Source of the DNA: Pristiophorus japonicus
Lineage: Eukaryota
Length of the DNA stretch: 64,000 bases
Direction: 5' to 3'
Assembly (NCBI RefSeq): GCF_044704955.1
Contig: NC_091999.1
Location: forward strand, 32,116,001 to 32,180,000
The notes under the pieces were generated by a model, which ran no database searches, was not told the DNA's origin, and worked only from the letters and a program-made list of their open reading frames with translations. The stretch's first letter is position 1. Each line of letters opens with the position of its first letter. Of this stretch, positions 396-63,600 are shown piece after piece. Both the position numbers and the translations under genes were made by a program.

Positions 396-523
396 CTTCA
401 CCAGAGTGATGGCAGTGCTGTAGGAAATGCTCAGGAAGAACAGGATGATGAATGTGGAAGCGGTTGTCGAGATTTTGTCGCTCTCGTCCTCGTACTCTTC
501 ACTCCAGATGTGGTCTGAGGAAT
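396..523 (-). CDS. IGHM: IgM membrane exon TM1
   Basis: Acceptor cccgtAG (525-524), phase 1, matching the Cmu4 internal donor. Reads (D)SSDHIWSEEYEDESDKISTTASTFIILFFLSISYSTAITLVK: acidic spacer plus the TASTF...LF.LS..YS antigen-receptor TM motif. Confidence 0.92.
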
Positions 524-1229: not shown

Positions 1230-2650
1230 AGGGTGTTACTGTGTGTGTTTATGTAATTGTGTGCGTGCTTTTCTCTGTGTGTGTACGTTTATGTGTAAAA
1301 GTTTGTGTGTGTGTGTTTATGTGTAACTGTGTTTGTTGATGTGTAAGTTTGTGCACGTGTGCAGTTGTAAGATTGAGTATGCGTGTGTAAATCTTTGTGT
1401 TATTTTGTGTAAGTGGGCCTGTGTCTATATGGAAGCGTGTGTTTATCTGTAATTATGAGTGTGCGATTTGGTGTAGTTGGGTGCAGGTAAGTTTATGTAT
1501 AAGCACGTCCATGTCTAAGGGTTTGTGTATTGATGTTTGTGTGTGTATGTTTGTGTGCAAGTGTGTTCACGTGTGTGCATTTGTGTAAGTGTATGTGTAT
1601 CCTTGTGTATATGTATGTAAGTTCATGTGTGTGTTTGTCTGTAAGTGTAAGTGTGTGATTATGTCTGAGTGTTCGTTTATGTTTAGGTGTAAGTGTGTGC
1701 GTGTTTACATGTAACAGTGGGTTTGCAGGTAAGTTTGTGTGTGTGTGTTTTATGTTAGTGTGTGTGTGGATTGATGTGTGTGCTTATGTGTGTGTAAGTG
1801 TGTGTAAGTGTGTTTTTGTAAGTGAGTGTTTGGATTGATGTATGTGGAAGTGTGTGTTTGTAAGTGGGTGTTTGGATTGACGTGTGTGAAAATGTGTGTG
1901 TGTAAGTGTGTATAAGTGTGCTTTTTGTAAGTGTGTTTGGATTGATGTTTGTGTTTATGTGTGTTTAAGTGTGTGTACGTGTGTTTTGTGTAAGTGCATG
2001 TGTGGATTCATGTGTGCGTTTATGTGTTTGTAAATGTGTTTTGTGTAAGTGTGTATAAGTGTTTGCACGTGTGTTTTGTGTAAGTGTGTGTGTGGATTGA
2101 CGTGTGTGTTTATGTGTGTGTAAGTGTGTGTGTGTGTGTGTTTTGGGTAAGTGCGTGTGTGGATTGATGTGTATGTTTATGTGTGAGTAAGTGTGTTTTG
2201 TGTAAGTGCGTGTGTGGATTGATGTGTGTGTTAATGTGTGTGAAAGTGTGTGTACCTGTGTTTTGTGTAAGTGTATGTGTGGATTGATGTGTCTGTGTAT
2301 GTGTGTGAAAGTGTGTTTTGTGTAAGTGCGTGTATGGATTGATGTGTCTATTTATGTGTGTGCAAGTGTGCTTTTTGTAAGTGTGTTTGGATTGGTATGT
2401 GTGTGTTTATGTGTGTGTAAGTGTGTTCCGTGTAAGTGTGTGTAAGTGTGCTTTGTGTAATTGTGTGTTTGGATTGATGTGTGTGTGTAAGTGTGTGTAA
2501 GTGTATTTTGTGTAAGTATATGTGTGGATTGATGTGAAGTAATTATGGGTGTGTAAGTGCGTGTCAGTATGTTTTGTGAAATGTGTGTGTGGATTGAAGT
2601 GTGTCTTTATGTGTGTGTAACTGTGTTTTGTGTAGTGTGTGTTTGGATTA
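1230..2650. repeat. TG-rich low-complexity satellite (gtgtgtaagt / ggattgatgt motifs)
   Basis: Directly visible degenerate tandem array in the Cmu4-TM1 intron. Confidence 0.9.
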
Positions 2651-4654
2651 TTGTCTATTATTGCTAATGTTCGAAGTTTCAGAGAGTATCAATAACTGGA
2701 TTTTACAATGATGGTTTTCATTATATTCTAGTTATGTGTAATATTGTGTGTCAGAGTGTTAACGTATGTCTTTATATATAAGTCTATGTGTGTTTATGTG
2801 TAATTGTGCACTTACACAAAAACACAAACACTTACACAAAATCATCAACACACTTCCATGTGAACACACACAACCTCACTTTCATATTTATTCTCCCGAC
2901 TCTGTAAATGTGTTCTGTTTGAGGAATAATGTGACGTCAGCCGAAAGAATGCAACAATTCAACCGATGGGCCTCAGAAACATCAGGGACACTGTGAGAAA
3001 CCCGCAGAGGATTAATTCACCAGTTTAGATATGGCCCGTTAGAATTCAACATGTTCGTTTACAATTAACAGGGACAATTTCACCCCAACACTATTTAAAA
3101 ATATTACGTGGAATAAATAGTTATTTCAGAATAGAATACTCATGTGGCAAGTTTAAAATCTTTACACCATGGGTTAGAATCTCACATTGTACACAGTGTG
3201 TTTATGTGTGTGTAAATGTGATTTTTGTAAGTGTGTATAAGTGTTTGTAAGTGTGTGTAAGTGTTTGCACCTGTGTTTTGTGTAAGTGTGTGTGTGGATT
3301 GACGTGTGTGTTTATGTGTGTGTGCGTGTGTGGATTGATGTGTATGTTTGTGTGTGTAAGTGTGTTTTGTGTAAGTGCGTGTGTGGATTGATATGTGTAT
3401 TTATGTGTGCGTAAGTGTGTTTTGTGTAAGTGTGTCTGTGGATTGATGTGAGTATTTATGTGTGTGTAAGTGTGTTTGGTGTAAGTACGTGTGTGGATTG
3501 ATGTGTGTGTTTATGTGTGTGAAAGTATATTTTTTGTAATTGCGTGTATGGATTGATGTGTGTATTTATGTGTGTGTAAGTATATGCAAGTTTGGTTTTT
3601 GTAAGTGTGTGTTTGGATTGGTGTGTGTGTGTTTATGTGTGTGTAAGTGTGTTTGGTGTAAGTGTGTGTGTGGATTGATGTGTGTGTTTATGTGTGTGAA
3701 AGTATGTTTTATGTAAGTGTGTGTATGGATTGATGTGTGTATTTATGTGTGTGTAAGTATATGCATGTGTGGTTTTTGTAAGTGTGTGTTTGGATTGGTG
3801 TCTGTGTGTTTATGTGTGTGTAAGTGTGTTTGGTGTAAGTGTGTGTGTGGATTGATGTGTGTGTTTATGTGTGTGAAAGTATGTTTTATGTAAGTGCGTG
3901 TATGGATTGATGTGTGTATGTATGTGTGTGTAAGTGTGTGCAAGTGTGCATTTTGTAAGTGTGTGTTTGGATTGGTGTGTGTGTTTATGCGTGTGTAAGT
4001 GTGTTTTGTGTAAGTGTGCTTTGTGTAAGTGTGTGTGTGGATTGACGTGTGTTTTTATGTGTGTAAGTGTGTGTAACTGTGTTTTGTGTAGTGTGTGTTT
4101 GGATTGATATCTATTATTGCTACTGTTCGAAGTTTCAGAGAGTATCAATAACTGGGTTTTACAAAGATGGTTTTCATTATATTCTAGTTATGTATAATAT
4201 TATGTGTCAGAGTGTTAATGTATGTCTTTATATGTAAGTCTATGTGTGTTTATGTGTAATTGTGCACTTACACAAAAACACACACACTTACACAAAGTCA
4301 TCAACATACTTCCATGTGAACACACACAAACTCACTTTCACATTTATTCTCCCTGGCTCTGTGTAAATGTGTTCTGTTTGAGGAATAATGTGACGTCAGC
4401 TGAAAGAATGCAACGATTCAACCGATGGGCCTCAGAAACATCAGGGACACAACTGTGAGAAACCCGCAGTGGATTCAATCACCAGTTTAGATATGGCCCA
4501 TTAGAATTCAACATGTTTGTTTACAATTAACAGGGACTGCTGCACCCCCAACCCTATTTAAAAATATTACGTGGAATAAATAGTTATTTCAGAATATAAT
4601 ACTCATGTGGCAAATTTAAAATATTTAGACCATGGTTTAGAATCTCACATTGTA
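2622..4654. repeat. Tandem duplication: ~570-bp unique block at 2622-3192 and 4080-4654, with TG satellite (3195-4080) between
   Basis: Near-identical text in both copies (e.g. gttcgaagtttcagagagtatcaataactgg ... gaatctcacattgtac). The two ORF-track peptides MSLY.SLCVFMCNCALTQKH are paralogous. Confidence 0.9.
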
Positions 4655-6807: not shown

Positions 6808-7116
6808 CCTTTTCCTTGTGGATGGAATCTCTGATCGGAGTCGGCATATCCTGATGGCTCACCACGCAGTAGAACTTATCCCCACTCAGCCAGTCTTGTA
6901 TCGAGATGTTTAAGTTGCTGATCACGCTGTTGGGATCCTCTCCCGGTTGGACGGCAATCTCTGATTTCAAAGCCTCCTTTTCTCGGGTCCAGGACACGGT
7001 GAGCCCATAAGGAGCGTCAGACACGACGCAGGTTAAGGTCACCGTCGCCTCCAGTAAGACCTGTTCCAGTGACGGTGGGCGATGAGTGATTTTTGAATCA
7101 CTGCATGGGACATCCA
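6808..7116 (-). CDS. IGHM: IgM Cmu3 exon
   Basis: Acceptor tttcgcAG, donor G|GTGAGC, 309 nt, phase 1-1. Reads (V)[32 protein letters not shown]...[19 protein letters not shown]: C1-set Ig domain typical of shark mu. Confidence 0.96.
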
Positions 7117-9068: not shown

Positions 9069-9386
9069 CCTGAGATCTGCTGAAGTTACGGCTTTGCGTG
9101 ACCCCTTCATGAGTGACTTGGCAGGTGTAGACCGAGCCGGTGAACCATTCCTCGGCGGGGACTGTCAGCCGACTGGCCGTCGAGAAGTTCCCGTTCACCT
9201 CAAAGACGGGAGAGGTGACGAAGCCCGAATCCAGGAGTTGTCCACTCTTCAGCCAATTCACGGTCAGTGACTTTGGCCGGAAATCGATGATTGAACACAC
9301 GGCGCTTGCATATCTGCTGGTGGTGATTTGTTCAGTGGAACTCAGCGTGAGGAGAACAGTTGGAGGACCGATGTCCGGTTCAGGAT
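9069..9386 (-). CDS. IGHM: IgM Cmu2 exon
   Basis: Acceptor tttttttttgaAG, donor G|GTAAGA, 318 nt, phase 1-1. Reads (D)[13 protein letters not shown]...[19 protein letters not shown]...[20 protein letters not shown]. Confidence 0.96.
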
Positions 9387-9504: not shown

Positions 9505-9990
9505 GAGAGCAGAACTGTGCACAGTATTCTCAGTGTAATATGCAGACCAGAACTGTGCATAATATTCTAAGTGCGATATGAGGTCCAGAACCATGCACAG
9601 TATTCTAAGCATGATATGGAGACCACAACTTTATGCCGTATTCTAAGTATGAGATCGAAACCAGAACTTTAAAGAATATTCTAACTGTGATATGGAGACC
9701 GGAACTGTGCATAATATTCTTAGTATGATATGGAGACCAGAACTTTAGACACTAATCTAAGTATGAGATGGAAACCAGAATTGTGACCAATATTCTAAAT
9801 GTGATAAGGAGACTAGAACTGTGCTCAGTATTCTAAGTATTATGTGGAAATCATAACTGTACACAATACTCTAAGTGTGATTTGGAGACGAGAACTGAAC
9901 ACAGTATTCTAAGTATGATAGGGAGAGCAGAACTGTACACAGTACTCTAGGTGTTGTCTTACCAAATTGCTATACAAGTTGAGCATAATT
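9505..9990. repeat. 38-bp minisatellite (~11 units) grading into an antisense CR1 fragment
   Basis: ccagaac/ccacaac recurs at 9547, 9585, 9623, 9661. Consensus gagaccagaactgtgcacagtattctaagtgtgatatg. Confidence 0.85.
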
Positions 9991-10032: not shown

Positions 10033-10332
10033 CTGGCATTGTGATGGCCCAGACCGACACACCACGTCGAACCTCACAGAAGATTGTGCTGCTCCCCACA
10101 TCTGACTTGGTGATGGTTAACTGGCTGCTCTGGGTGTAGATTCCTTTCTTGTTGAACACTGACGGGTAGGTCTTCAATGCAGTGGTGATGGGATCTTTAT
10201 CTTTCTTCCAGGAAAGGCTGGTGATGTCGGGGGAGTAGTCCATCGCCAAACAGCCGTATGTGATGGAGCCATCGGTGCTGGGTTGTTCACAGGAGGAGAG
10301 CAGGGCGTAGAGATTGGGGGGAAACGGTGTTA
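10033..10332 (-). CDS. IGHM: IgM Cmu1 exon
   Basis: Acceptor tttctcAG, donor G|GTTAGT, 300 nt. Reads (V)[43 protein letters not shown]...FCEVRRG and retains the N-terminal Cys used for light-chain pairing. Confidence 0.96.
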
Positions 10333-17000: not shown

Positions 17001-17567
17001 ATAATGTTAGTAATATTAATTTAAATCAGGTCCATCTGGAAATGTGTTAATTTTTCAGTCCTTAATTACAGCAACACTTCACGTATTGAATCTGTGCATT
17101 CGGGAACATTCGGTCAGTAGATGACAAATGTAATTTTCACTAAAATCTTTAAATTCCTTAAGAATATATATTGAGCGCTAAGATTTATGTTATGTGTTTA
17201 AAATGTTCTTTCAAAAATATTTAAACACAATGTTTGTATTCGATCAGAAAAATTGCAGCAATCATAGGTCACCGAGATTAAACATTGCAGAAGTGTCAAA
17301 CAGTCTAACAACTTTAAAGGATTTAACGTAACTCAAGCACAGAAACTCGTTAGCAGATAAACACCAAATCACTTCAACAACAACTTATGTGGAGAAACAG
17401 TTGAATTCTATAATCACTTTGTAGCAGAATTACATAAAACATTGAAAAATCTCAATAGAGAACCCACCGAACCCAAGTTTCAGTGAACAAAATAAGTATT
17501 AAAATAAAGAGAAATGTAAAATAAAGGCACAAATACAACAGTTGCAGAATGTATGAATGTTCCTTAC

Positions 17568-17632
17568 CTGCAATCACCGTCACCATGGTCCCTGGTCCCC
17601 AGTAGCCCATGGCGTCCTTATTCCCGTGGTCC
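17568..17632 (-). CDS. IGHJ: Pre-fused DH-JH segment (65 nt)
   Basis: G GAC CAC GGG AAT AAG GAC GCC ATG GGC TAC TGG GGA CCA GGG ACC ATG GTG ACG GTG ATT GCA G|GTAAGG = DHGNKDAMGYWGPGTMVTVIA. Has the WGxG motif and a phase-1 donor matching Cmu1. Confidence 0.92.
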
Positions 17633-17660
17633 CACAGTGATAGGAACCCGTACAAATATT
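17633..17660 (+). other. Recombination signal sequence, 12-bp spacer, 5' of the DJ block
   Basis: On +: CACAGTG (17633-17639), 12-nt spacer ATAGGAACCCGT, nonamer ACAAATATT (17652-17660; 6/9 to ACAAAAACC). Confidence 0.88.
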
Positions 17661-18065
17661 GCATTCAGTCTCTGCTCAGTACTGATTCTCAACATTCATT
17701 CGAAATACACATGCACTTCAAATACAAATTCGCTTCTTATCAAGTTTAGAATTTAGCCAACAGTTTGTAGAACAAATAGAAGGAGAACACAGTTCTCACC
17801 AGCTCCCTGCAGGTATCAGGCACAGTGAATCGAGCATCATGTCCAGCTGGGCAATTGTTGACACTGTTAACATTAAACAGGAGCACAACAGAAACCTCCC
17901 TCTGTACATTGGTTACAGTGTTATATTTTCACCATTGAATTATCAGTGTCTTAGTTTTGTAAGAAGCGGTTTGTGGTCTGGTTTTGAACAATGCCGTTAT
18001 CACTGCATTTGACACAATTACTGACCGTCAGGTTATGATGGACGTTATTGAATTCCCCCTCGATC

Positions 18066-18104
18066 TGTTCTTGTATGGGTCCAGCCCTGGTTCCTCTCGC
18101 TGTG
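18066..18104 (-). other. Recombination signal sequence, 23-bp spacer, 3' of VH
   Basis: CACAGCG (18104-18098), 23-nt spacer AGAGGAACCAGGGCTGGACCCAT, nonamer ACAAGAACA (18074-18066). Confidence 0.93.
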
Positions 18105-18409
18105 GTGCCTTGCACAGTAATAGATGGCGGTGTCTTCGCTCCGCAGTTTCTTCATGTCGAACGCGAAGATGTTGCTTGAAGTATCTTTGGACACAGTAAA
18201 TCGGCCCTCAGTCCCCGGGGTGTAATGCTTGTCCGATGAACTGTAATATCTAATCAGCCACTCCAGCCCCTGTCCGGGAATGTGGCGGACCCAGTACATG
18301 TAGCTGCCACCAAGATCTAAGCCGCTGGTTTTACAGGTCAGTCTCAGGGAGCCCCCGGGAATCCTGGTCTCTGCCTCGGGCTGAGTCAACACCATATCCG
18401 ACTGGACAC
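18105..18409 (-). CDS. IGHV: Unrearranged VH exon (shark IgM-type)
   Basis: Acceptor tttctacAG (18411-18410). Reads (R)[51 protein letters not shown]...[32 protein letters not shown] with canonical Cys, Trp and YYC intact. Confidence 0.98.
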
Positions 18410-18534
18410 CTGTAGAAATAATCAAAAACCCCGAGGATCAATCCTGGTGAAACGATTCCTAATTCTGTAACATTCCAGAGAGACTAACACTGAGACAGGA
18501 ACAATGAAAGACTTGGACAATAAAAACTACTCAC

Positions 18535-18580
18535 GGGAAAAGAAAGCCAGCAACAGACTGAGAGAAATAGCCGACCTCAT
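18535..18580 (-). CDS. IGHV: VH leader (signal peptide) exon
   Basis: ATG at 18580-18578; MRSAISLSLLLAFFS plus one base, then donor GTGAGT. 46 nt, phase 1, in frame with the V exon. Confidence 0.95.
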
Positions 18581-18672
18581 CCTCCTGGCAATGTGTGGTG
18601 AATGGTTTCGGCAAGAACTCACTGGGCAAACGCACTCCCAGACTGTTGTATTGCGGTCCCAGTGACCGGCAG

Positions 18673-18755
18673 TTAAATACCCGGGAGGTGGGGGCGAGGT
18701 TACAGGCGCCGCCCGCTGATTCCCTGATAGAGGCGGATTCTGGGTCCACGTCACT
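18673..18755 (-). promoter_or_regulatory. VH promoter: TATA-like box and CRE-like decamer, no octamer
   Basis: TATTTAA at 18679-18673 and AGTGACGTGG at 18755-18746. No ATGCAAAT/ATTTGCAT seen nearby, consistent with octamer-less shark VH promoters. Confidence 0.65.
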
Positions 18756-19363
18756 CCTTCCACATCACCAACAGAATGGACTCACATCTGGACTGTAAAT
18801 AAAATCAATTTATTTCCTCACTGCTTCACAGGGTCGTGAATCTCTGAGATAGAAATACATTATCAGGTTCTAAAGACACGGCCAGTTTGTGTTTCTCCAT
18901 CTCCTGCTATATATCCATGCATCTGTACCAATAAAGTATCCCCTATAATCTGAATTGTTATCACTCTATGTAACCGAGTGCGGGAGATGGGTATAAAAGA
19001 TGGGTATAAAAGGCTCAGCAGTCCGGGGAGCGTCGGGAGACGCGGGAGTCGAGAGAGGCAGCGGCCTATAAAAGGCTCAGCAGTCCGGGGAGCGTCGAGA
19101 GACGCGGGAGTCGAGAGAGGCAGCGGCCTATAAAAGGCTCAGCAGTCCGGGGAGCGTCGAGAGAGGCGGGAGTCGAGAGAGGCGTACTTGTGCAGCTCCA
19201 GCTGAGAGAAGTCAAAAAAGAAGTAGAAAGAAATCAAAAGGTGACGTCACAGCCAACGTGGTAAGTGATTGGCTGCTGATTGGTGAGTAGTTTTTCTTTT
19301 TCTTTTTAGTCAGTAACTTTTAACATTGTTGTCGGCAATTTAAGTGTATCTAAGGGTTAAGTC

Positions 19364-20311
19364 ATGGCAGGACAGCTCGGTCACGTGATATGCTCATCCT
19401 GTACCATGTGGGAACACGGGGACAACACCAGTGTCCCTGACGACTACATGTGCGGAAAGTGTGTCCACCTCCGGCTACTGACGGTCCGCGTTGCGGAGTT
19501 GGAGCTGAAGGTGGATTCACTCTGGAGCATCCACGATGCTGAGAATGACGTGAGTATCACGTGTAGCGAGTTGGTCTTACCGCAGGAGAAGGGTCCACAG
19601 CCAGCGAGGGAATGGAAGACCAGCAGGAAGAGTAGTGCAAGGAAGGTAGTGCAGGGGTCCCCTGTGGTCATCCCACTGCAAAACAGATACACTGCTTTGA
19701 GTGCTGTTGAGGGGGATGACTCATCAGGAGCGGGCAGCAGCAGCCAAGTTCATGGCACCGTGGCTGGCTCTGTTGCACAGGAGGGCAGGAAAAAGAGTGG
19801 GCGAGCGATAGTGATAGGGGATTCAATTGTAAGGGGAATAGATAGGCGTTTCTGCGGTCGCAACCGAGACTCCAGGATGGTATGTTGCCTCCCTGGTGCA
19901 AGGGTCAAGGATGTCTCGGAGCGGGTGCAGGACATTCTAAAAAGGGAGGGAGAACAGCCAGTTGTCGTGGTGCACGTTGGTACCAAAGACATAGGTAAAA
20001 AAAGGGATGAGTTCCTACGAAATGAACTTAAGAAGCTAGGAGCTAAATTAAAAAGTAGGACCTCAAAAGTAGTAATCTCGGGATTGCTACCAGTGCCACG
20101 TGCTAGTCAGAGTAGGAATCGCAGGATAGCTCAGATGAATACGTGGCTTGAGCAATGGTGCAGCAGGGAGGGATTCAAATTCCTGGGGCATTGGAACCGG
20201 TTCTGGGGGAGGTGGGACCAGTACAAACCGGACGGTCTGCACCTGGGCAGAATCGGAACCAATGTCCTCGGGGGAGTGTTTGCTAGTGCTGTTGGGGAGG
20301 AGTTCAACTAA
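19364..20311 (+). CDS. LINE ORF1p: N-terminal CxxC..CxxC zinc finger / leucine zipper plus SGNH esterase domain
   Basis: CSSC...CGKC, heptad LTVRVAELELKVDSL, and VIGDSIVR, PGAR, HVGTKD (N to K versus the usual GTND) and DGLHL motifs. Esterase-bearing ORF1 is known for CR1 elements. Confidence 0.9.
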   Translation: MAGQLGHVICSSCTMWEHGDNTSVPDDYMCGKCVHLRLLTVRVAELELKVDSLWSIHDAENDVSITCSELVLPQEKGPQPAREWKTSRKSSARKVVQGSPVVIPLQNRYTALSAVEGDDSSGAGSSSQVHGTVAGSVAQEGRKKSGRAIVIGDSIVRGIDRRFCGRNRDSRMVCCLPGARVKDVSERVQDILKREGEQPVVVVHVGTKDIGKKRDEFLRNELKKLGAKLKSRTSKVVISGLLPVPRASQSRNRRIAQMNTWLEQWCSREGFKFLGHWNRFWGRWDQYKPDGLHLGRIGTNVLGGVFASAVGEEFN

Positions 20312-20388
20312 TATGGCAGGGGGATGGGAACCAATGCAGGGAAATAGAGGGAAACAAAAAGGAGGCAAAAACATATGACAGAAAGGAG

Positions 20389-23294
20389 ATGAGGAAAAGT
20401 GGAGGGCAGAGAAACCCAAGGCAAAGAACAAAAAGGGCCATTGTACAGCAAAATTCTAAAAGGACAGAGGGTGTTAAAAAAACAAGCCTAAAGGCTTCGT
20501 GTCCTAATGCAAGGAGTATCCGCAATAAGGTGGATGAATTAACTGTGCAAATAGATGTTAACAAATATGATGTGATTGGGATTACGGAGACGTGGCTCCA
20601 GGATGATCAGGGCTGGGAACTCAACATCCAGGGGTATTCAACATTCAGGAAGGATAGAATAAAAGAAAAAGGAGGTGGGGTAGCATTGCTGGTTAAGGAG
20701 GAGATTAAGGCAATAGGTAGGAAGGACATTAGCTTGGATGATGTGGAATCTATATGTGTAGAGCTGCAGAACACTAAAGGGCAAAAAACGTTAGTGGGAG
20801 TTGTGTACAGACCTCCAAACAGTAGTAGTGATGTTGGGGAGGCATCAAACATGAAATTAGGGGTGCGTGCAATAAAGGTGCAGCAGTTATAATGGGTGAC
20901 TTTAATATGCACATAGATTGGGCTAATCAAACTGGAAGCAATACGGTGGAGAAGGATTTTCTGGAGTGCATAAGGGATGGTTTTTTAGACCAATATGTCG
21001 AAGAGCCAACTAGGGGGGAGGCCATCTTAGACTGGGTGTTATGTAATGAGAGAGGGTTAATTAGCAATCTCGTTGTGCGAGGCCCCTTGGGGAAGAGTGA
21101 CCATAATATGGTGGAATTCTGCATTGGGATGGAGAATAAAACAGTTAATTCAGAGACCATGGTCCAGAACTTAAAGAAGGCTAACTTTGAAGGTATGAGG
21201 CGTGAATTGGCTGGGATGGATTGGCGAATGATACTTAAGGGGTTGACTGTGGATGGGCAATGGCAGACATTTCGAGACCGCATGGATGAACTACAACAAT
21301 TGTACATTCCTGTCTGGCATAAAAATAAAAAAGGGAAGGTGGCTCAACCGTGGCTATCAAGGGAAATCAGGGATAGTATTAAAGCCAAGGAAGTGGCATA
21401 CAAATTGGCCAGAAATAGCAGCGAATCTGGGGACTGGGAGAAATTTAGAACTCAGCAGAGGAGGACAAAGGGTTTGATTAGGGCAGGGAAAATGGAGTAT
21501 GAGAAGAAGCTTGCAGGGAACATTAAGACGGATTGCAAAAGATTCTACAGATATGTAAAGAGAAAAAGGTTCATAAAGACAAACGTAGGTCCCCTACAGT
21601 CAGAATCAGGGGAAGTCATAACGGGGAACAAAGAAATGGCGGACCAATTGAACAAGTACTTTGGTTCGGTATTCACGAAGGAGGACACGAACAACCTTCC
21701 GGTTATAAAAGGGGTCGGGGAGTGTAGTAAGGAGGAGGATCTGAGGGAAATCCTTATTAGCCGTCAAATTGTGTTGGGGAAATTGATGGGATGGAAGGCC
21801 GATAAATCCCCAGGGCCTGATGGACTGCATCCCAGAGTACTTAAGGAGGTGGCCTTGGAAATAGTGGATGCGTTGACAGGCATTTTCCAACATTCCATTG
21901 ACTCTGGATCAGTTCCTATGGAGTGGAGGGTAGCCAATGTAATCCCACTTTTTAAAAAAGGAAGGAAAGAGAAAAAAGGGAATTATAGACCGGTCAGTCT
22001 GACATCGGTAGTGGGTAAAATGATGGAATCAATTATTAAGGATGTCACAGCAGTGCATTTGGAAAGAGGTGACATAATAGGTCCAAGTCAGCATGGATTT
22101 GTGAAAGGGAAATCATGCTTGACAAATCTTCTGGAATTTTTTGAGGATGTTTCCAGTAGAGTGGATAAGGGAGAACCAGTTGATGTGGTATATTTGGACT
22201 TTCAGAAGGCGTTCGACAAGGTCCCACACAAGAGATTGATGCGCAAAGTTAGAGCACATGGGATTGGGGGTAGTGTACTGACATGGATTGAGAACTGGTT
22301 GTCAGACAGGAAACAAAGAGTCGGAGTAAATGGGTACTTTTCAGAATGGCAGGCAGTGACTAGTGGGGGAACGCAAGGTTCTGTGCTGGGGCCCGAGCTG
22401 TTTACACTGTACATTAATGATTTAGATGAGGGGATTAAATGTAGTATCTCCAAATTTGCGGATGACACTGAGTTGGATGGCAGTGTGAGCTGCGAGGAGG
22501 ATGCTGTGAGGCTGGAGAGCGACTTGGATATGTTAGGTGAGTGGGCAAATGCATGGCAGATGAAGTATAATGTTGATAAATGTGAGGTTATCCACTTTGG
22601 TGGTAAAAACAGAGAGACAGACTATTATCTGAAGGGTGACAGATTAGGAAAAGGGGAGGTGCAAAGAGACCTGGGTGTCATGGTACATCAGTCATTGAAG
22701 GTTGGCATGCAGGTGCAGCAGGCGGTTAAGAAAGCAAATGGCATGTTGGCCTTCATAGCAAGGGGATTTGAGTACAGGGGCAGGGAGGTGTTGCTACAGT
22801 TGTACAGGGCATTGGTGAGGCCACACCTGGAGTATTGTGTACAGTTTTGGTCTCCTAACCTGAGAAAGGACATTCTTGCTATTGAGGGAGTGCAGCGACG
22901 GTTCAACAAACTGATTCCCGGGATGGCGGGACTGACCTATCAAGAAAGACTGGATCAACTGGGCTTGTATTCACTGGAGTTCAGAAGAATGAGAGGGGAC
23001 CTCATAGAAACATTTAAAATTCTGACGGGGTTAGACAGGTTAGATGCAGGAAGAATGTTCCCAATGTTGGGGAAGTCCATAACCAGAGGTCACAGTCTAA
23101 GGATAAGGGGTAAGCCATTTAGGACCGAGATGCGGAGGAACTTCTTCACCCAGAGAGTGGTGAACCTGTGGAATTCTCTACCACAGAAAGTTATTGAGGC
23201 CAATTCACTAAATATATTCAAAAAGGAGATCGATAAGGTCCTTACTACTAGGGGGATCAAGGGGTATGGCGAGAAAGCAGGAATGGGGTACTGA
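20389..23294 (+). pseudogene. LINE ORF2p (AP endonuclease plus reverse transcriptase) with one frameshift
   Basis: NARS, ITETW, VYRPP, GDFN and SDH motifs (APE); YRPVSL, QHGF, LDFQKAFD, QGSVLGP and FADD motifs (RT). One-nt deletion near 20840 relative to the paralog at ~62860. PQG is changed to TQG. Confidence 0.92.
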
Positions 23295-24704: not shown

Positions 24705-24939
24705 NNNNNNNNNNNNNNNNNNNNNNNNNNNNNNNNNNNNNNNNNNNNNNNNNNNNNNNNNNNNNNNNNNNNNNNNNNNNNNNNNNNNNNNNNNNNNNNN
24801 NNNNNNNNNNNNNNNNNNNNNNNNNNNNNNNNNNNNNNNNNNNNNNNNNNNNNNNNNNNNNNNNNNNNNNNNNNNNNNNNNNNNNNNNNNNNNNNNNNNN
24901 NNNNNNNNNNNNNNNNNNNNNNNNNNNNNNNNNNNNNNN
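24705..24939. other. Assembly gap (235 N)
   Basis: Run of N. Confidence 1.
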
Positions 24940-27324: not shown

Positions 27325-28882
27325 AGTACTTAAGGAGGTGGCCTTGGAAATAGTGGATGCATTGACAGTCATTTTCCAACATTCCATTGAATCTGGTTCA
27401 GTTCCTATGGAGTGGAGGGTAGCCAATGTAACCCCACTTTTTAAAAAAGGAGGGAGAGAGAAAACAGGGAATTACAGACCGGTCAGCCTGACATCGGTAG
27501 TGGGTAAAATGATGGAATCAATTATTAAGGATGTCATAGCAGTGCATTTGGAAAGAGGTAATATGATAGGTCCAAGTCAGCATGGAGTTGCGAAAGGGAA
27601 ATCATGCTTGACAAATCTTCTGGAATTTTTTCAGGATGTTTCCAGTAGAGTGGACAAGGGAGAACCAGTTGATGTGGTATATTTGGACTTACAGAAGGCT
27701 TTCGACAAGGTCCCACACAAGAGATTAATGTGCAAAGTTAAAGCACATGGGATTGGGGGTAGTGTGCTGACATGGATTGAGAACTGGTTGTCAGACAGGA
27801 AGCAAAGAGTAGGAGTAAATGGGGACTTTTCAGAATGGCAGGCAGTGACTAGTGGGGTACCGCAAGGTTCTGTGCTGGGGCCCCAGCTGTTTACACTGTA
27901 CATTAATGATTTAGACGATGGGATTAAATGTAGTAAATTCAAATTTGCGGATGACACTAAGTTGGGTGGCAGTGTGAGCTGCAAGGAGGATTCTATGAGG
28001 CTGCAGAGCGACTTGGATAGGTTAGGTGAGTGGGCACATGCATAGCAGATGAAGAATAATGTGGATAAATGTGAGGTTATCCATTTTGGTGGTAAACACA
28101 GAGAGACAGACTATTATCTGAATGGTGACAGATTAGGAAAAGGGGAGGTGCAAACAGACCTGGGTGTCATGGTACATCAGTCATTGAAGGTTGGCATGCA
28201 GGTACAGCAGGCGGTTAAGAAAGCAAATGGCATGTTGGCCTTCATAGCGAGGGGATCTGAGTACAAGAGCAGGGACGTGTTGCTACAATTGTACAGGGCC
28301 TTGGTGAGGCCACACCTGGAGTATTGTGTACAGTTTTGGTCTCCTAACCTGAGGAAGGACATTCTTACTATTGAGGGAGTGCAGCGAAGGTTCACCAGAC
28401 TGATTCCCGGGATGGCGGGACTGACCTATCAAGAAAGATTGGATCAACTGGCCTTGTATTCACTGGAGTTCAGAAGAATGAGAGGGGACCTCAAAGAAAC
28501 GTTTAAAATTCTGACGGGGTTAGACAGGTTAGATGCAGGAAGAATGTTCCCAATGTTTGGGAAGTCCAGAACCAGGGGACACAGTCTAAGGATAAGGGGG
28601 AAGCCATTTAGGACCGAGATGAGGAGGAATTTCTTCACCCAGAGAGTGGTGAACCTGTGGAATTCTCTACCAGAGAAAGTTGTTGAGGCCAATTCACTAA
28701 ATATATTCAAAAAGGAGTGAGATGAAGTCCTTACTACTAGGGGAATCAAGGGGTATGGTGAGAAAGCAGGAATGGGGTACTGAAGTTGCATGTTCAGCCA
28801 TGAACTCATTGAATGGCGGTGCAGGCTAGAAGGGCCGAATGGCCTTCTCCTGCACCTATTTTCTATGTGTCTATGTTTCTAT
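27325..28882 (+). mobile_element. 5'-truncated young CR1 LINE inserted in the 27-bp minisatellite
   Basis: Very similar to 21836-23400. Premature TAG at 28043-28045. Tail ctatgtttctat. 8-bp target-site duplication ACAGGGTC at 27317-27324 and 28883-28890. Confidence 0.93.
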
Positions 28883-53119: not shown

Positions 53120-56100
53120 ACCCTGTCTTCGTTATTTGTGCACTTGACCATGCGTCTGTTAGATAGACAGAAGATATATAGACGGTGGATAGATATTAAT
53201 AAAAATAAAGATATTTATGTGTGTGGGTGGGAGGATGCAATACTTTTTTGGTTAGAACATAGGTTTCGTTTCACTAATAGGTAACAAGAGTTGTGGGCAA
53301 TGTCAAATTGATCTGGTATTGTGTCTGTAATATTTGTGTGAGCGGATGGGGTGAACATTGTAACAATCTCCCAGAGATGGACTGGGATTGAGGGACAGGA
53401 CTGAAGGGGAGCAATTCACTGCACTTTGCACTACTTAGTGGCACTCGGTGTGTTAAAGATTACTAATTCATACTTGTGTTGTCCTGTGCCAATTGCTCCC
53501 AGTTCTTTAATGTTAAGGATTGTTTTTCCTGCAGTATTTTCTATTGAGCTTTCACGTGACCCATTGATTGTGTCAGACCGAGCCTGGAACCGTGATCTCA
53601 GAGTACCGCCGGATGTGCGGCCGCAGGGTCCAAACATCCACCGGAATATAAATCATCTGCTTAAGACGAACAACTGAAAAGAGCACACACACAGTGNNNN
53701 NNNNNNNNNNNNNNNNNNNNNNNNNNNNNNNNNNNNNNNNNNNNNNNNNNNNNNNNNNNNNNNNNNNNNNNNNNNNNNNNNNNNNNNNNNNNNNNNNNNN
53801 NNNNNNNNNNNNNNNNNNNNNNNNNNNNNNNNNNNNNNNNNNNNNNNNNNNNNNNNNNNNNNNNNNNNNNNNNNNNNNNNNNNNNNNNNNNNNNNNNNNN
53901 NNNNNNNNNNNNNNNNNNNNNNNNNNNNNNNNNNNNNNNNNNNNNNNNNNNNNNNNNNNNNNNNNNNNNNCATAAGGTGTGCAAGTGCATTCCACAAAGG
54001 TAAACTATTAGCTCCAACCATTATTTTTCAGCATTTTATTTTATTCAACAGCTAACTGCAGGTCGTTTAATACCTTTAACATTTATTGATAACACATTGT
54101 CTTGCTTGCTCTTCTTTAGAAAGCGATGTCACACTGACCATTCTGTTATCAAGTTGACCATGTATGTCCGCAGTATTCAGTGGGAAAGTGGATTAAATCA
54201 CACCGAGAATAATGAGCATCCAGCCACCAGTCTCAGCGCTTTATTGTCCAGTGATCACCTCACCATCACACAGAATCCGCTGATATACACGTCAAGTGTA
54301 TGATTATTGGTGCAAGTGATGGTAAGCATGAAACTTCACCTGTACCTGGCATGAGGTTAATAAATCTGTAACTATCGGACTTATTGTCTCTCTCATTACG
54401 CCAGACCCCTTCGCAGTTTTTACTGCAGTAGACTCAGACTCAGTTTTTTTGGTTGATGTGATGGACTTCCAAAAGGCATTTGATAAAGTGCTTTGATAAT
54501 ATCCTTGCCAGCAAAGTTGAAACCCATAGAATATAAGGGACAGTGGCATCATGGATATGAAATTGGCTGAGTGACAGGAGTCAGAGAGCTGTGGGTTTTT
54601 TTTGGACTGGAGGGAGGTATACAGTGGTGTTTCGCAGCGGCTGGTTCTAGGAACATTGCTTTTCTTGATTTATATTCATGACCTGGATTCGGGTGTACTG
54701 GGCACAAGTTCAACATTTTCAAACGATTCAAAGCTTGGAAGTTTAGTGAACAGTGAGGAGAGGAGGATAGTGATGACTTCAAGAGGACAGCGACATGCTG
54801 GTGGAATAGACGGACACGTGGCAAATGAAACGCAGAAAAGTGTGAAGTTATACATTTTGGTAGGAAGAACGAAGAGAGGAACATTAACTGAAGGGTACAA
54901 TACTAAAAGCTGTGATGAACGTAGGGACCTGGGGCTATATATGCAAAAATCTTTGAAGGTGGCAGGGCAGGTTGAGAAAGTGTTTTAAAAAACATATGGG
55001 ATCCTGGGCTTCATAAATAGAGGAATAGAATATATAAGCAAAGAATTTATGATGAACCTGTGTAAAACACGGTTTCGACCTCAACCTATTACTGTGTCCA
55101 ATTCTGGGCACCGTACTTTAGGAAGGATGTGAACGCCTTAGAGCGGGTGCAGAAAATATTTACTTGTGGTTCCAGGGATAAGGTACTGCAGTTATGTGGA
55201 TAGACTGGAGAAGCTGGGGTTGTTTTTCTTAGAGCACAGAATTTTGAGATGAGACAAAATAGAGGTGTTCTGAATCATAAGGGGTCGAGACAGAGTAGCT
55301 GGAGACAAACCGTTCCCATTGGCGGAAGGGTCGAGAACAGGATACAGATTTATCACAATTGCAGAACAACCTAAATTTACATGTGGAAAAATTAGGATCT
55401 GGAATGCACTGCCTGAAAGAGTGGTGGAGACAGATTCAATCATGGCATGGAATTGGATAAGTTCCTGAAGGAAGAACAATCACAGGGTTACCGGAAAGGG
55501 CAGGGGAGTGCACTAGCTGAAATACTCTTGCAGAGGGCGGCATGCTCTATACGGGCCGAATGACTCTCTTCTGTGCCATAATTCTATAATTCTATACACC
55601 AGGGACTGTCTCAGGTATTACTATGCGAGACCCTCTTCAAGTTTATATAACCCCAGCCACAACGTTAAAAATTCACTCGCTCCACCACCGGCGCACCATG
55701 TCTGCAGTGATTACTATCCACAAGGTGCATTGCAGCAACTCGCCAAGACATCTTCGACAGCACTTTCCAAACCTACGACCTCTTTCACCTAGAAGAACAA
55801 AGGCCGCAGGCTCCTGGGAACACAATCACCTCCAAGTTCGCCTCCAAATCACACACCATCTTGACTTGGAAATTTATTACCATTGCTTAATAATCGCTGG
55901 GTCAAATTCGTGGAACCCGCTCTCTAACACTGTGGGAGTGCCTTCACCACACGGTCTACAGCGGGTCAAAGGGGCAGCTCACAACCTGCTTCTCAAGACC
56001 TATTATGGATAGGCAATTAATGTTGGCCTTGATTGCACTGTCTGAATGATTGCTGAGACAGATTCAATCATGGCATGGAATTGGATATGTTCCTGAAGAA

Positions 56101-60652: not shown

Positions 60653-63600
60653 CGAGAGGCAGCGGGAGTTCGTGGTCGCTGAGGCGTGAGTCCGGGGATC
60701 GGCAGAGGCCTATAAAAGGCCGCGAGAGGCAGCGGAAGTTCGTGGTCGCTGAGGCGTGAGTCTTGGGATCAGCAGCGGCTTATAAAATGCCGCGAGAGGC
60801 AGCGGGAGTTCGTGGTCGCTGAGGCGTGAGTCCGAGGATCAGCAGAGGCCTAGAAAGGCCGCGAGAGGCAGCGGGAGGTCGTGGTCGCTGAGGCGTGAGT
60901 CCGGGGATCAGCAGAGGCCTATAAACGCCGCGAGAGTTCGTGGTCGCTGAGGCGTGAGTCTGGGGATCAGCAGAGGCCTATAAAGACCGCGAGAGGCAGC
61001 GGGAGTCCGGGGATCAGCAGAGGCCTATAAAGGCCGCGAGAGGCAGCGCGAGTCCGCGGATCAGCACAGGCCTATAAATGCAGCGGGAGTTCGTGGTCGC
61101 TGAGGCTTGAGTCCGGGGATCAGCAGAGGCCTATAAAGGCCGCGAGAGGTAGCGGGAGTTCGTGGTCGCTGAGGCGTGAGTCCGGGGATCAGCAGAGGCC
61201 TATACAGGCGTACTTGTGCAGCTACAGGGAGAAGGAAAAAAAAGGAACATAAAGTTGACGTCACAGCCTAGGAGGTAAGTGATTGACTGGTGATTGGTGA
61301 GTAGCTTTGCTTTTTCTTTTTTTTATCAGTCAGTAACTTTTAACATTGTTGTTGCCAATTTAAGTGTATCTAAGTGTTAATTCATGGCAGGAGAACTCGC
61401 TTGGGTGTAATGCTCCTGCTGTATCATGTGGGAACTCAGGGACACTTCCGGTGTCCCTGACGACTATGTGTGTGGGAAGTGTATCCGCCTCCAGCTCCTG
61501 ACGGACCGCGTTGCGGAATTGGAGCTGAGTGTGCATTAACTCTGGAGCATCCGCGATGCTGAGAATGACGTGAGTAGCACGTGTTGCGAGTTGGTCTTAC
61601 CGCAGGAGAAGGTTCCACAGCCAGATAGGGAATGGAAGACCAGCAGGAAGAGTAGTGCAAGGAAGGTAGTGCAGGGGTCCCCTGTGGTCATCCCCCTGCA
61701 AAACAGATATACTGCTTTGAATGCTGTTGGGGGGGATGACTCATCAGGCGAGGGCAGCAGCAGCCAAGTTCATGACACCGTGGCTGGCTCTGTTGCACAG
61801 GAGAGCACGAAAAAGAGTGGGAGAGCGATAGTGATAGCGGATTCAATTGTGAGGGGAATAGATAGGCGTTTCTGCGGCCGCAACCGAGACTCCAGGATGT
61901 TATGTTGCCTACCTGGTGCAAGGGTCAAAGATGTCTTGGAGTGGGTGCAGGACATTCTAAAAAGGGAGGGAGAACAGCCAGTTGTCGTGGTGCACATTGG
62001 TACCAACGACATTGGTTAAAAAAAGGGATGAGGTCCTACGAAACGAATTTAAGGAGCTAGGAGCTAAATTAAAAAGTAGGACCTCAAAAGTAGTAATCTC
62101 GGGATGCTACCAATGCCACGTGCTAGTCAGAGTAGGAATCGCAGGATAGCGCAGATGAATACGTGGCTTGAGCAGAGTGCAGCAGGGATGGATTCAAATT
62201 CCTGGGGCATTGGAACTGGTTCTGAGGAAGTTGGGGCCAGGACAAACCGGACGGTCTGCACGTGGGCAGCACCAGAACCAATGTCCTCGGGGGAGTGTTT
62301 GCTAGTGCTGTTGGGGAGGAGTTAAACTAAAAATGCAGGGGGATGGGAACCAATGCAGGGAGACAGAGGGAAACAAAAAGGAGGCAAAAGCAAAAGACAG
62401 AAAGGAGATGAGGAAAAGTGGAGGGCAGAGAAACCCAAGGCAAAAAACAAAAAGGGCTACTGTACAGCAAAATTCTAAAAGGACAAAGGGTGTTAAAAAA
62501 ACAAGCCTGAAGGCTTTGTGTCTTAATGCAAGGAGTATCCGCAATAAGGTGGATGAAGTAACTGCGCAAAAAGATGTTAACAAATATGGTGCGATTGGGA
62601 TTACGGAGACGTGGCTCCAGGATGATCAGGGCTGGGAACTCAACATCCAGGGGTATTCAACATTCAGGAAGGATAGAATAAAAGGAAAAGGAGGTGGGGT
62701 AGCATTGCTGGTTAAAGAGGAGATTAATGCAATTGTTCGGAAAGACATTAGCTTGGATGATGTGGAATCTATAAGGGTAGAGCTGCAGAACACCAAAGGG
62801 CAAAAAACGTTAGTGGGAGTTGTGTACAGACCTCCAAACAGTAGTAGTGATGTCGGGGAGGGCATCAAACAGGAAATTAGGGGTGCATGCAATAAAGGTG
62901 CAGCAGTTATAATGGGTGACTTTAATATGCACATAGATTGGGCTAGCCAAACTAGAAGCAATACGGTGGAGGAGGATTTCCTGGAGTGCAGAAGGAATGG
63001 TTTTCTAGACCAATATGTCGAGGAACCAACTAGGGGGGAGGCTATCTTCGACTGGGTGTTGTGTAATGAGAGAGGATTAATTAGCAATCTCATTGTGCGA
63101 GGCCCCTTGGGGAAGAGTGACCATAATATGGTGGAATTCTGCATTAGGATTGAGAATGAAACAGTTAATTCAGAGACCATGCACCAGCACTTAAAGTAGG
63201 GTAACTTTGAAGGGATGAGGTGTGAATTGGCTAGGATAGATTGCCGAATGATACTTAAGGGGTTGACTGTGGATGGGCAATGGCAGACATTTAGAGACCG
63301 CATGGATGAACTACAACAATTGTACATTCCTGTCTGGCGTAAAAATAAAAAAGGGAAGGTGGCTCAACCGTGGCTATCAAGGGAAATCAGGGATAGTATT
63401 AAAGCCAAGGAAGTGGCATACAAATTGGCCAGAAATAGCAGCGAACCCGTGGACTAGGAGAAATTTAGAACTCAGCAGAGGAGGAGAAAGGACTTGATTA
63501 GGGCAGGGCAAATGGAGTACGAGAAGAAGCTTGCAGGGAACATTAAGGCAGATTGCAAAAGTTTCTACAGATATGTAAAGAGAAAAAGGTTAGTAAAGAC

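Follow-up and report, generated by a model that had tools for sequence, protein, structure and literature searches.

The 64-kb window, by which we mean the whole stretch of DNA that was analysed, carries one whole IgM minilocus, which spans ~18.2 kb and lies on the minus strand. Read in the direction of the gene, the leader and the VH exon with its 23-RSS are followed by a 405-bp gap, a 12-RSS and a D..J block and then, across an intron of 7235 nt, by the exons Cmu1 to Cmu4, the secretory tail and TM1 (Table 1). Coordinates are given as plus-strand numbers of the window; the positions in an earlier note on this DNA led to the correct site, but its numbers were those of the plus strand and the gene is encoded on the minus strand. 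That note had called the locus an IgM cluster, and the V-set exon, the four C1-set exons, the secretory tail and TM1 bear this out.

Table 1. Segments of the IgM minilocus in the direction of the gene, with plus-strand coordinates of the window.
Feature	Coordinates	Strand	Description
Leader exon	18535..18580	-	ATG at 18580; encodes MRSAISLSLLLAFFS plus 1 nt; GT donor at 18534
VH exon	18105..18409	-	Open; C-terminal end ...AIYYCARH; ends ...TATTACTGTGCAAGGCAC
V 23-RSS	18066..18104	-	Directly after VH; heptamer CACAGCG, spacer of exactly 23 nt, nonamer ACAAGAACA
Intersegment gap	17661..18065	-	405 bp; without D segment or RSS pair
12-RSS	17633..17660	-	Nonamer AATATTTGT, 12-nt spacer, perfect heptamer CACTGTG; type found 5' of a D
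Putative D-derived part	17614..17632	-	GGACCACGGGAATAAG, possibly extended by GAC; boundary uncertain by ~3 nt
JH proper	17568..17613	-	AMGYWGPGTMVTVIA; GT donor at 17567
Cmu1 exon	10033..10332	-	300 nt, phase 1, 7235 nt downstream of J; C1-set
Cmu2 exon	9069..9386	-	C1-set, E 3e-17
Cmu3 exon	6808..7116	-	C1-set
Cmu4 exon with secretory tail and stop codon	5503..5894	-	C1-set
TM1 exon	402..523 (approximate boundaries)	-	Exon reading (...TTASTFIILFFLSISYSTAITL)

Homology searches were run exon by exon, and the named relatives of the V and C exons are heavy chains of Heterodontus, Chiloscyllium, Scyliorhinus, Rhincodon, Callorhinchus and Carcharhinus. The VH exon is recognised as a Pfam V-set domain (E 2e-14), and its best identity, 66-70%, is to V regions of shark Ig heavy chains. 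Pfam C1-set domains were found in all four C exons (4/4); Cmu1 has 62% identity to Cmu1 of Mustelus asterias, and the best identity for Cmu4, 84-87%, is to Cmu4 fragments of Carcharhinus plumbeus and to a Logan ORF. The leader is almost the same as that of Heterodontus HV01, and its intron of 125 nt is spliced out in an RNA contig of a paralogue (joint 18406>18532). All the exons are open and in phase 1, with their AG/GT borders intact, and tblastn across the 64-kb window found no second V, J or C. A protein of 66 aa labelled as Salmonella enterica (MCY5962400.1) falls, at 90% or more, into the same cluster (that of P0030) as a Cmu4 ORF of shark type, and is most likely fish DNA contamination of that bacterial assembly.

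The dimensions of the minilocus are those of published shark IgM clusters. One source gives them a span of 18-20 kb (PMC2191167), and another reports a J-C distance of 6.3-6.8 kb and a spacing of ~400 bp between segments (PMC2435157); the span of ~18.2 kb, the distance of ~400 bp from V to the next segment and the J-C intron of ~7 kb seen here all match. The introns and surroundings contain several repeats, among them a GT-rich minisatellite with periods of 55-232 bp between Cmu4 and TM1 (1800-4110) and a 38-bp tandem repeat of 11.7 copies in the Cmu1-Cmu2 intron (9505-9949). Runs of N are present in the window at 24705-24939 and 53697-53970.

The peculiarity of the cluster lies between V and J. 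The earlier note had read a 23-RSS at the end of VH and, ~410 bp beyond V, a 12-RSS with a perfect heptamer that runs into 65 in-frame nucleotides; both signals were recovered, and the gap between them measures 405 bp. In a read-through translation, the heptamer, spacer and nonamer of the V 23-RSS are conserved with respect to the Chiloscyllium punctatum sequence P0001 (HSERSQVWTHSKT in P0001), and from this conservation across species it appears that the V is still built to recombine. When the whole 64-kb window was compared with 200 block shuffles, a signal combining a perfect heptamer with a spacer of exactly 12 or 23 nt and a nonamer matching at 6/9 positions or more occurred once, as the 12-RSS of the DJ block, against a shuffle mean of 0.16. 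The heptamer of this 12-RSS abuts the 65-nt coding block (17632-17568), such that the signal is placed exactly at the coding boundary.

When both orientations were scanned with relaxed settings, no other heptamer and nonamer pair turned up between V and the 12-RSS, in agreement with the previous claim that the locus has no separate D with paired RSSs and that J is devoid of a 23-RSS of its own. The two free, RSS-flanked Ds that lie between V and J in the canonical unjoined form are thus absent from this cluster, whose coding segments abut with no signals between them while the outer signals are retained and no 23-RSS is present at J, as in the germline-joined class. An isolated CACTGTG heptamer does exist in the gap (17827-17821, minus strand), with no nonamer at 12 or 23 nt from it; by chance, 405 bp should contain ~0.05 heptamers of this kind when both strands are counted, and it could be either the remnant of an RSS or a coincidence. 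A degenerate D1 around this heptamer was considered and rejected, as it would have neither a nonamer nor a 3' signal. As far as the sequence tells, the 23-RSS and the 12-RSS face each other in deletional orientation with both heptamers starting in CAC, and the locus still obeys the 12/23 rule, as had been proposed, the V 23-RSS and the DJ 12-RSS being in the same orientation. In RNA run X6, contigs with a loose end at 18104 correspond to paralogous V transcripts that run past CACAGCG into ACCCGACCCGTTTTTGGTTTGTT, a spacer unlike the one found here, which contains a GGTTTTTGT-like motif.

We then asked where J begins within the 65-nt block, which reads DHGNKDAMGYWGPGTMVTVIA when translated in the frame that the GT donor at 17567 imposes. 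A paralogous rearranged transcript from run X6 matches the J only from position 17613 onwards (GCCATGGGCTACTGG...), with unrelated sequence upstream (joint 17613>18104). At the other end, an RNA contig with a loose end at 17569 continues into paralogous Cmu1 sequence, which indicates that the J splice site is used in the gene family. In the nurse shark, the TGG codon of JH is preceded by 14 nt, and D1 and D2 are 14 nt each (Fig. S1, PMC2435157), as compared with the 31 nt found before TGG here. From the divergence of the paralogous transcript above 17613 and the length of the nurse shark J, the J proper is expected to comprise ~46-49 nt and to start at 17616 or 17613. We thus take the first 16-19 nt of the block (GGACCACGGGAATAAG, perhaps plus GAC) as sequence that is not J, and the earlier observation that J is preceded by extra coding nucleotides and by a D-type 12-RSS holds. 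As the D part still abuts the heptamer, its 5' end would be the untouched 5' end of a D.

J segments can be long (~63 nt in human JH6), and the block could in principle be one of these, with no D-J joining at all. An ordinary long J would then have exchanged its 23 signal for a 12 signal, for example through a germline hybrid joint or RSS swap, and its cluster would have lost the Ds; hybrid joints of this kind have been proposed to swap RSSs in shark clusters (PMC2193153), and the residues before J are conserved with respect to Mustelus. We regard this explanation as improbable, since in the same species the transcript of a paralogue matches the J no further up than 17613, with unrelated sequence upstream of it, and the documented shark J has only ~14 nt before TGG (PMC2435157).

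We next consider the composition of the D part. The 31 pre-TGG nucleotides aligned to the D1, D2 and J flank of the nurse shark no better than shuffled sequences did, and a protein search with the 70-aa ORF that runs across the 12-RSS, the DJ block and the intron gave no candidate. By its length, the stretch of 31 nt would fit one D (~14-16 nt) plus the 5' end of J (~14 nt) better than two Ds plus N additions. From its 'GN' on, the peptide aligns without gaps to the Mustelus asterias model XP_078062221 (GNKDAMGYWGPG vs GNCDSMGYWGQG) with 15/19 identities, and the motif GN.D.MGYW is common to both at identical spacing. That the spacing is the same in both species speaks against private N additions and suggests an inherited germline block; on this comparison, the DJ block is probably old and shared rather than private to this copy.

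These results bear on how the fusion may have come about. The earlier note had proposed that the nucleotides before J are trimmed D1, D2 and N nucleotides; the outline of the joining mechanism stands, but this bookkeeping is partly doubtful, as 16-19 nt amount to one D and GN.D.MGYW is shared. A private two-step event in the germline of this cluster, in which D1-D2 and D2-J were joined and the 12-RSS of D1 was kept, such that the ~19 nt correspond to trimmed D1 plus D2 plus N, would agree with the distance of 405 bp from V to the 12-RSS, which is the normal V-D1 spacing (PMC2435157), and with the depth of the gap, which is even up to the 12-RSS and has no visible breakpoint. Moreover, shark lymphocytes do produce V-DDJ by RAG activity (PMC2435157). 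We consider such an event unlikely, because 16-19 nt would have to house two Ds (14 + 14 nt in the nurse shark) in addition to N, and because the GN.D.MGYW motif is found at the same spacing in another species.

Short-read contigs were used to assess whether the junction is a germline or a somatic one. In run X1, a contig covering 17490-17767 with 1 mismatch has a depth of 38.3, and in run X3 a contig covering 17479-17767 with 3 mismatches has a depth of 36.4; these junction contigs cross the intron, J, the D part, the 12-RSS and 107 bp of the gap. The contigs of the adjacent single-copy J-C intron have depths of 38.4, 41.9 and 36.6. Both X1 and X3 are DNA runs of one sample, possibly the assembly's own. 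If the joint were somatic and polyclonal, it should be much scarcer than an intron that every cell keeps, and the equality of the depths therefore favours a germline origin; the V-DJ feature is probably germline, in line with the preference of the earlier note for a germline over a somatic junction, which here is based on the single-copy depth of short-read contigs in two runs of one sample.

No contig spans the distance from the V RSS to the 12-RSS, and the linkage of V to DJ is the one provided solely by the assembly. At positions 17890, 18003, 18143 and 18282, in the V and the gap, all the aligned contigs differ from the window. The summed contig depth of the gap is 4-6 times that of a single copy, which indicates that paralogues share the gap sequence at 85% or more. 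The structure might be a somatic V-DDJ or V-D-DJ intermediate, or a collapse of similar paralogous clusters in the assembly. Some clusters of the nurse shark commonly pass through a somatic V-DDJ stage (PMC2435157), the paralogues are at least 85% alike over V, gap and J, and the best run contains only 45% of the sampled words of 17300-18700. However, in two runs the junction contigs are as deep as the single-copy intron beside them, and we consider either origin very improbable.

Other members of the family are joined further. In run X3, the DNA joints 17593>18105 and 17592>18109 belong to paralogous contigs in which V, CDR3 and J are contiguous and the leader intron is kept, which indicates that they are VDJ-joined in the DNA. 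One of these contigs, which reads GACTATTGAGGGCAAGGG, has a stop codon where the J tryptophan would be. They are probably germline-joined paralogues, of which at least one is a pseudogene.

Taken together, we find it fairly likely that the locus is a heritable IgM heavy-chain minilocus of the V - DJ form, in which a D was fused to JH, leaving no signal between them, by a RAG-type joint in germ cells, probably an ancestral one. In this proposal, a D-type 12-RSS would stand before 16-19 coding nucleotides of D origin that are joined to JH with no signal of any kind, and the VH, ~470 nt upstream, would keep its 23-RSS with no free D between it and the DJ block. The fusion would be a RAG-type coding joint, and it probably arose in the ancestor of a family of clusters and not in this copy. 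As to the number of Ds, the block may be a D2J whose cluster lost D1, or a D1 joined to an older D2J; the latter would take one more 22/12 event that retained the 12-RSS of D1. Since the remaining signals are a 23 and a 12 in the same orientation, a single deletional V-to-DJ join would be expected, and one such join in a lymphocyte would complete the gene. This would leave the C-terminal half of CDR3 (..DHGNKDAMGY) invariant, and one joint would be the source of all the junctional diversity. Both the one-step rearrangement and the expression of the gene are inferred from its sequence.

Whether the cluster is used is a matter for which the indications diverge. Run X6 can be taken as RNA, as it shows splicing of the leader intron and of J to Cmu1; in the RNA-like runs X5 and X6, which are very small, no contig of this V or of its D part was present, only contigs of paralogous V and J. 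In the 420 bp upstream of the leader ATG (18581-19000, minus strand) there is no Ig octamer (ATGCAAAT or ATTTGCAT, with up to 1 mismatch), and the search for a canonical TATA box upstream of the leader was negative, with only a TATTTAA at ~18686. The promoter may be impaired.

A CR1-like LINE lies on the plus strand at 19005-23294, facing away from the IgM cluster and starting ~425 bp upstream of the V leader ATG. A 62-bp tandem repeat (2.9 copies, 98% matches) is present at its 5' end, its ORF1 encodes 315 aa that include a GDSL-esterase domain, and the endonuclease/RT ORFs measure 167 and 800 aa (RVT_1, E 8e-30); the ORFs of the element are intact. The summed contig depth of the 5' repeat, ~370,000, indicates that the family is very abundant. 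Fragments of the same family are found at 27338-28720 and 62333-63199, both on the plus strand, with broken or partial RT/endonuclease ORFs.

The structure could thus be real and the cluster a silent relic that is neither transcribed nor rearranged, its V-DJ state having no immunological role. The missing canonical octamer, the LINE with intact ORFs that abuts the promoter region and the want of RNA support in very small RNA runs all point in this direction, as does the horned shark, whose germline-joined heavy-chain genes are not detectably expressed (PMC2193156). On the other hand, all the exons are open with intact splice sites, and both RSSs keep the critical CAC and the exact spacers, features which count against a relic; we hold this possibility to be tentative. 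With a similar reserve we mention the opposite one, namely, that the cluster is functional and forms part of a lineage-wide shift to a JH with a fused D2 and its 12-RSS, in which V/D/DJ, VD/DJ, V/DJ and VDJ forms would be placed on one chromosome, and in which rearrangement in a single, light-chain-like step would yield a semi-hard-wired CDR3.

The main evidence from nature for RAG activity in germ cells, and for its reshaping of antigen-receptor loci, comes from the germline-joined antibody genes of cartilaginous fish. If the proposed fusion is true, an inherited V-DJ would be the missing intermediate in the series of VD-J, VD-DJ and VDJ forms, germline joining would follow no fixed order, like somatic joining in sharks, and there would be a natural heavy-chain locus with a single diversifying junction. 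In sharks, rearrangement has no fixed order (PMC2435157), and a specialist would therefore expect a V-DJ form to exist. The mechanism and the class of germline joining were already known; it is the V-DJ configuration that appears to be new, and the gain is a modest, incremental one.

Germline DJ joints are indeed an established class, with VD1-D2J in the horned shark and the little skate (PMC2193153), and a germline VD-DJ form has also been described (PMC5192425). The reviews list germline VD-J/VDD-J, VD1-D2J/VD-DJ and VDJ forms, with V-DDJ described only as a somatic intermediate; in the literature searched, in which the older shark work is thinly covered, we found no description of a germline V-DJ or V-DDJ IgM cluster. 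The VDD-J, VD1-D2J and VDJ clusters of the horned shark and the little skate share with the present one the type of minilocus and the germline coding joint that leaves no signal, and in their D2J form the J is preceded by D nucleotides and a 12-RSS, as here (PMC2193153; PMC5192425). In those forms, however, the V is always joined to at least D1, whereas here it is free and ends in its own 23-RSS, with no free or V-joined D1 in the cluster, and the signal pair that is left is 23/12 instead of 22/12.

The somatic V-DDJ and V-D-DJ configurations of the nurse shark have an identical topology, with the V in germline state and a DJ or DDJ preceded by a 12-RSS (PMC2435157), but those intermediates are cell-specific and carry N regions, whereas the junction described here occurs at single-copy genomic depth and its pre-J sequence is partly shared with another species. 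The DJ intermediate of mammalian pro-B cells likewise has a 5' 12-RSS and awaits a V with a 23-RSS (PMC2435157); it is somatic and transient and belongs to a translocon with many V, in contrast to an inherited block with a single V at a distance of 470 nt. The V-J clusters of shark light chains, with which the earlier note had compared the locus, resemble the present one in having one V, one recombination step and one junction, although many of them are fully joined, and here the isotype is that of a heavy chain with a putatively hard-wired stretch derived from D. Finally, the nurse shark IgM1gj is also a product of germline joining in an IgM-type cluster, but it is a fully joined VDJ that needs no rearrangement and lacks Cmu2, whereas the cluster in the window would need one RAG step and has four Cmu exons.
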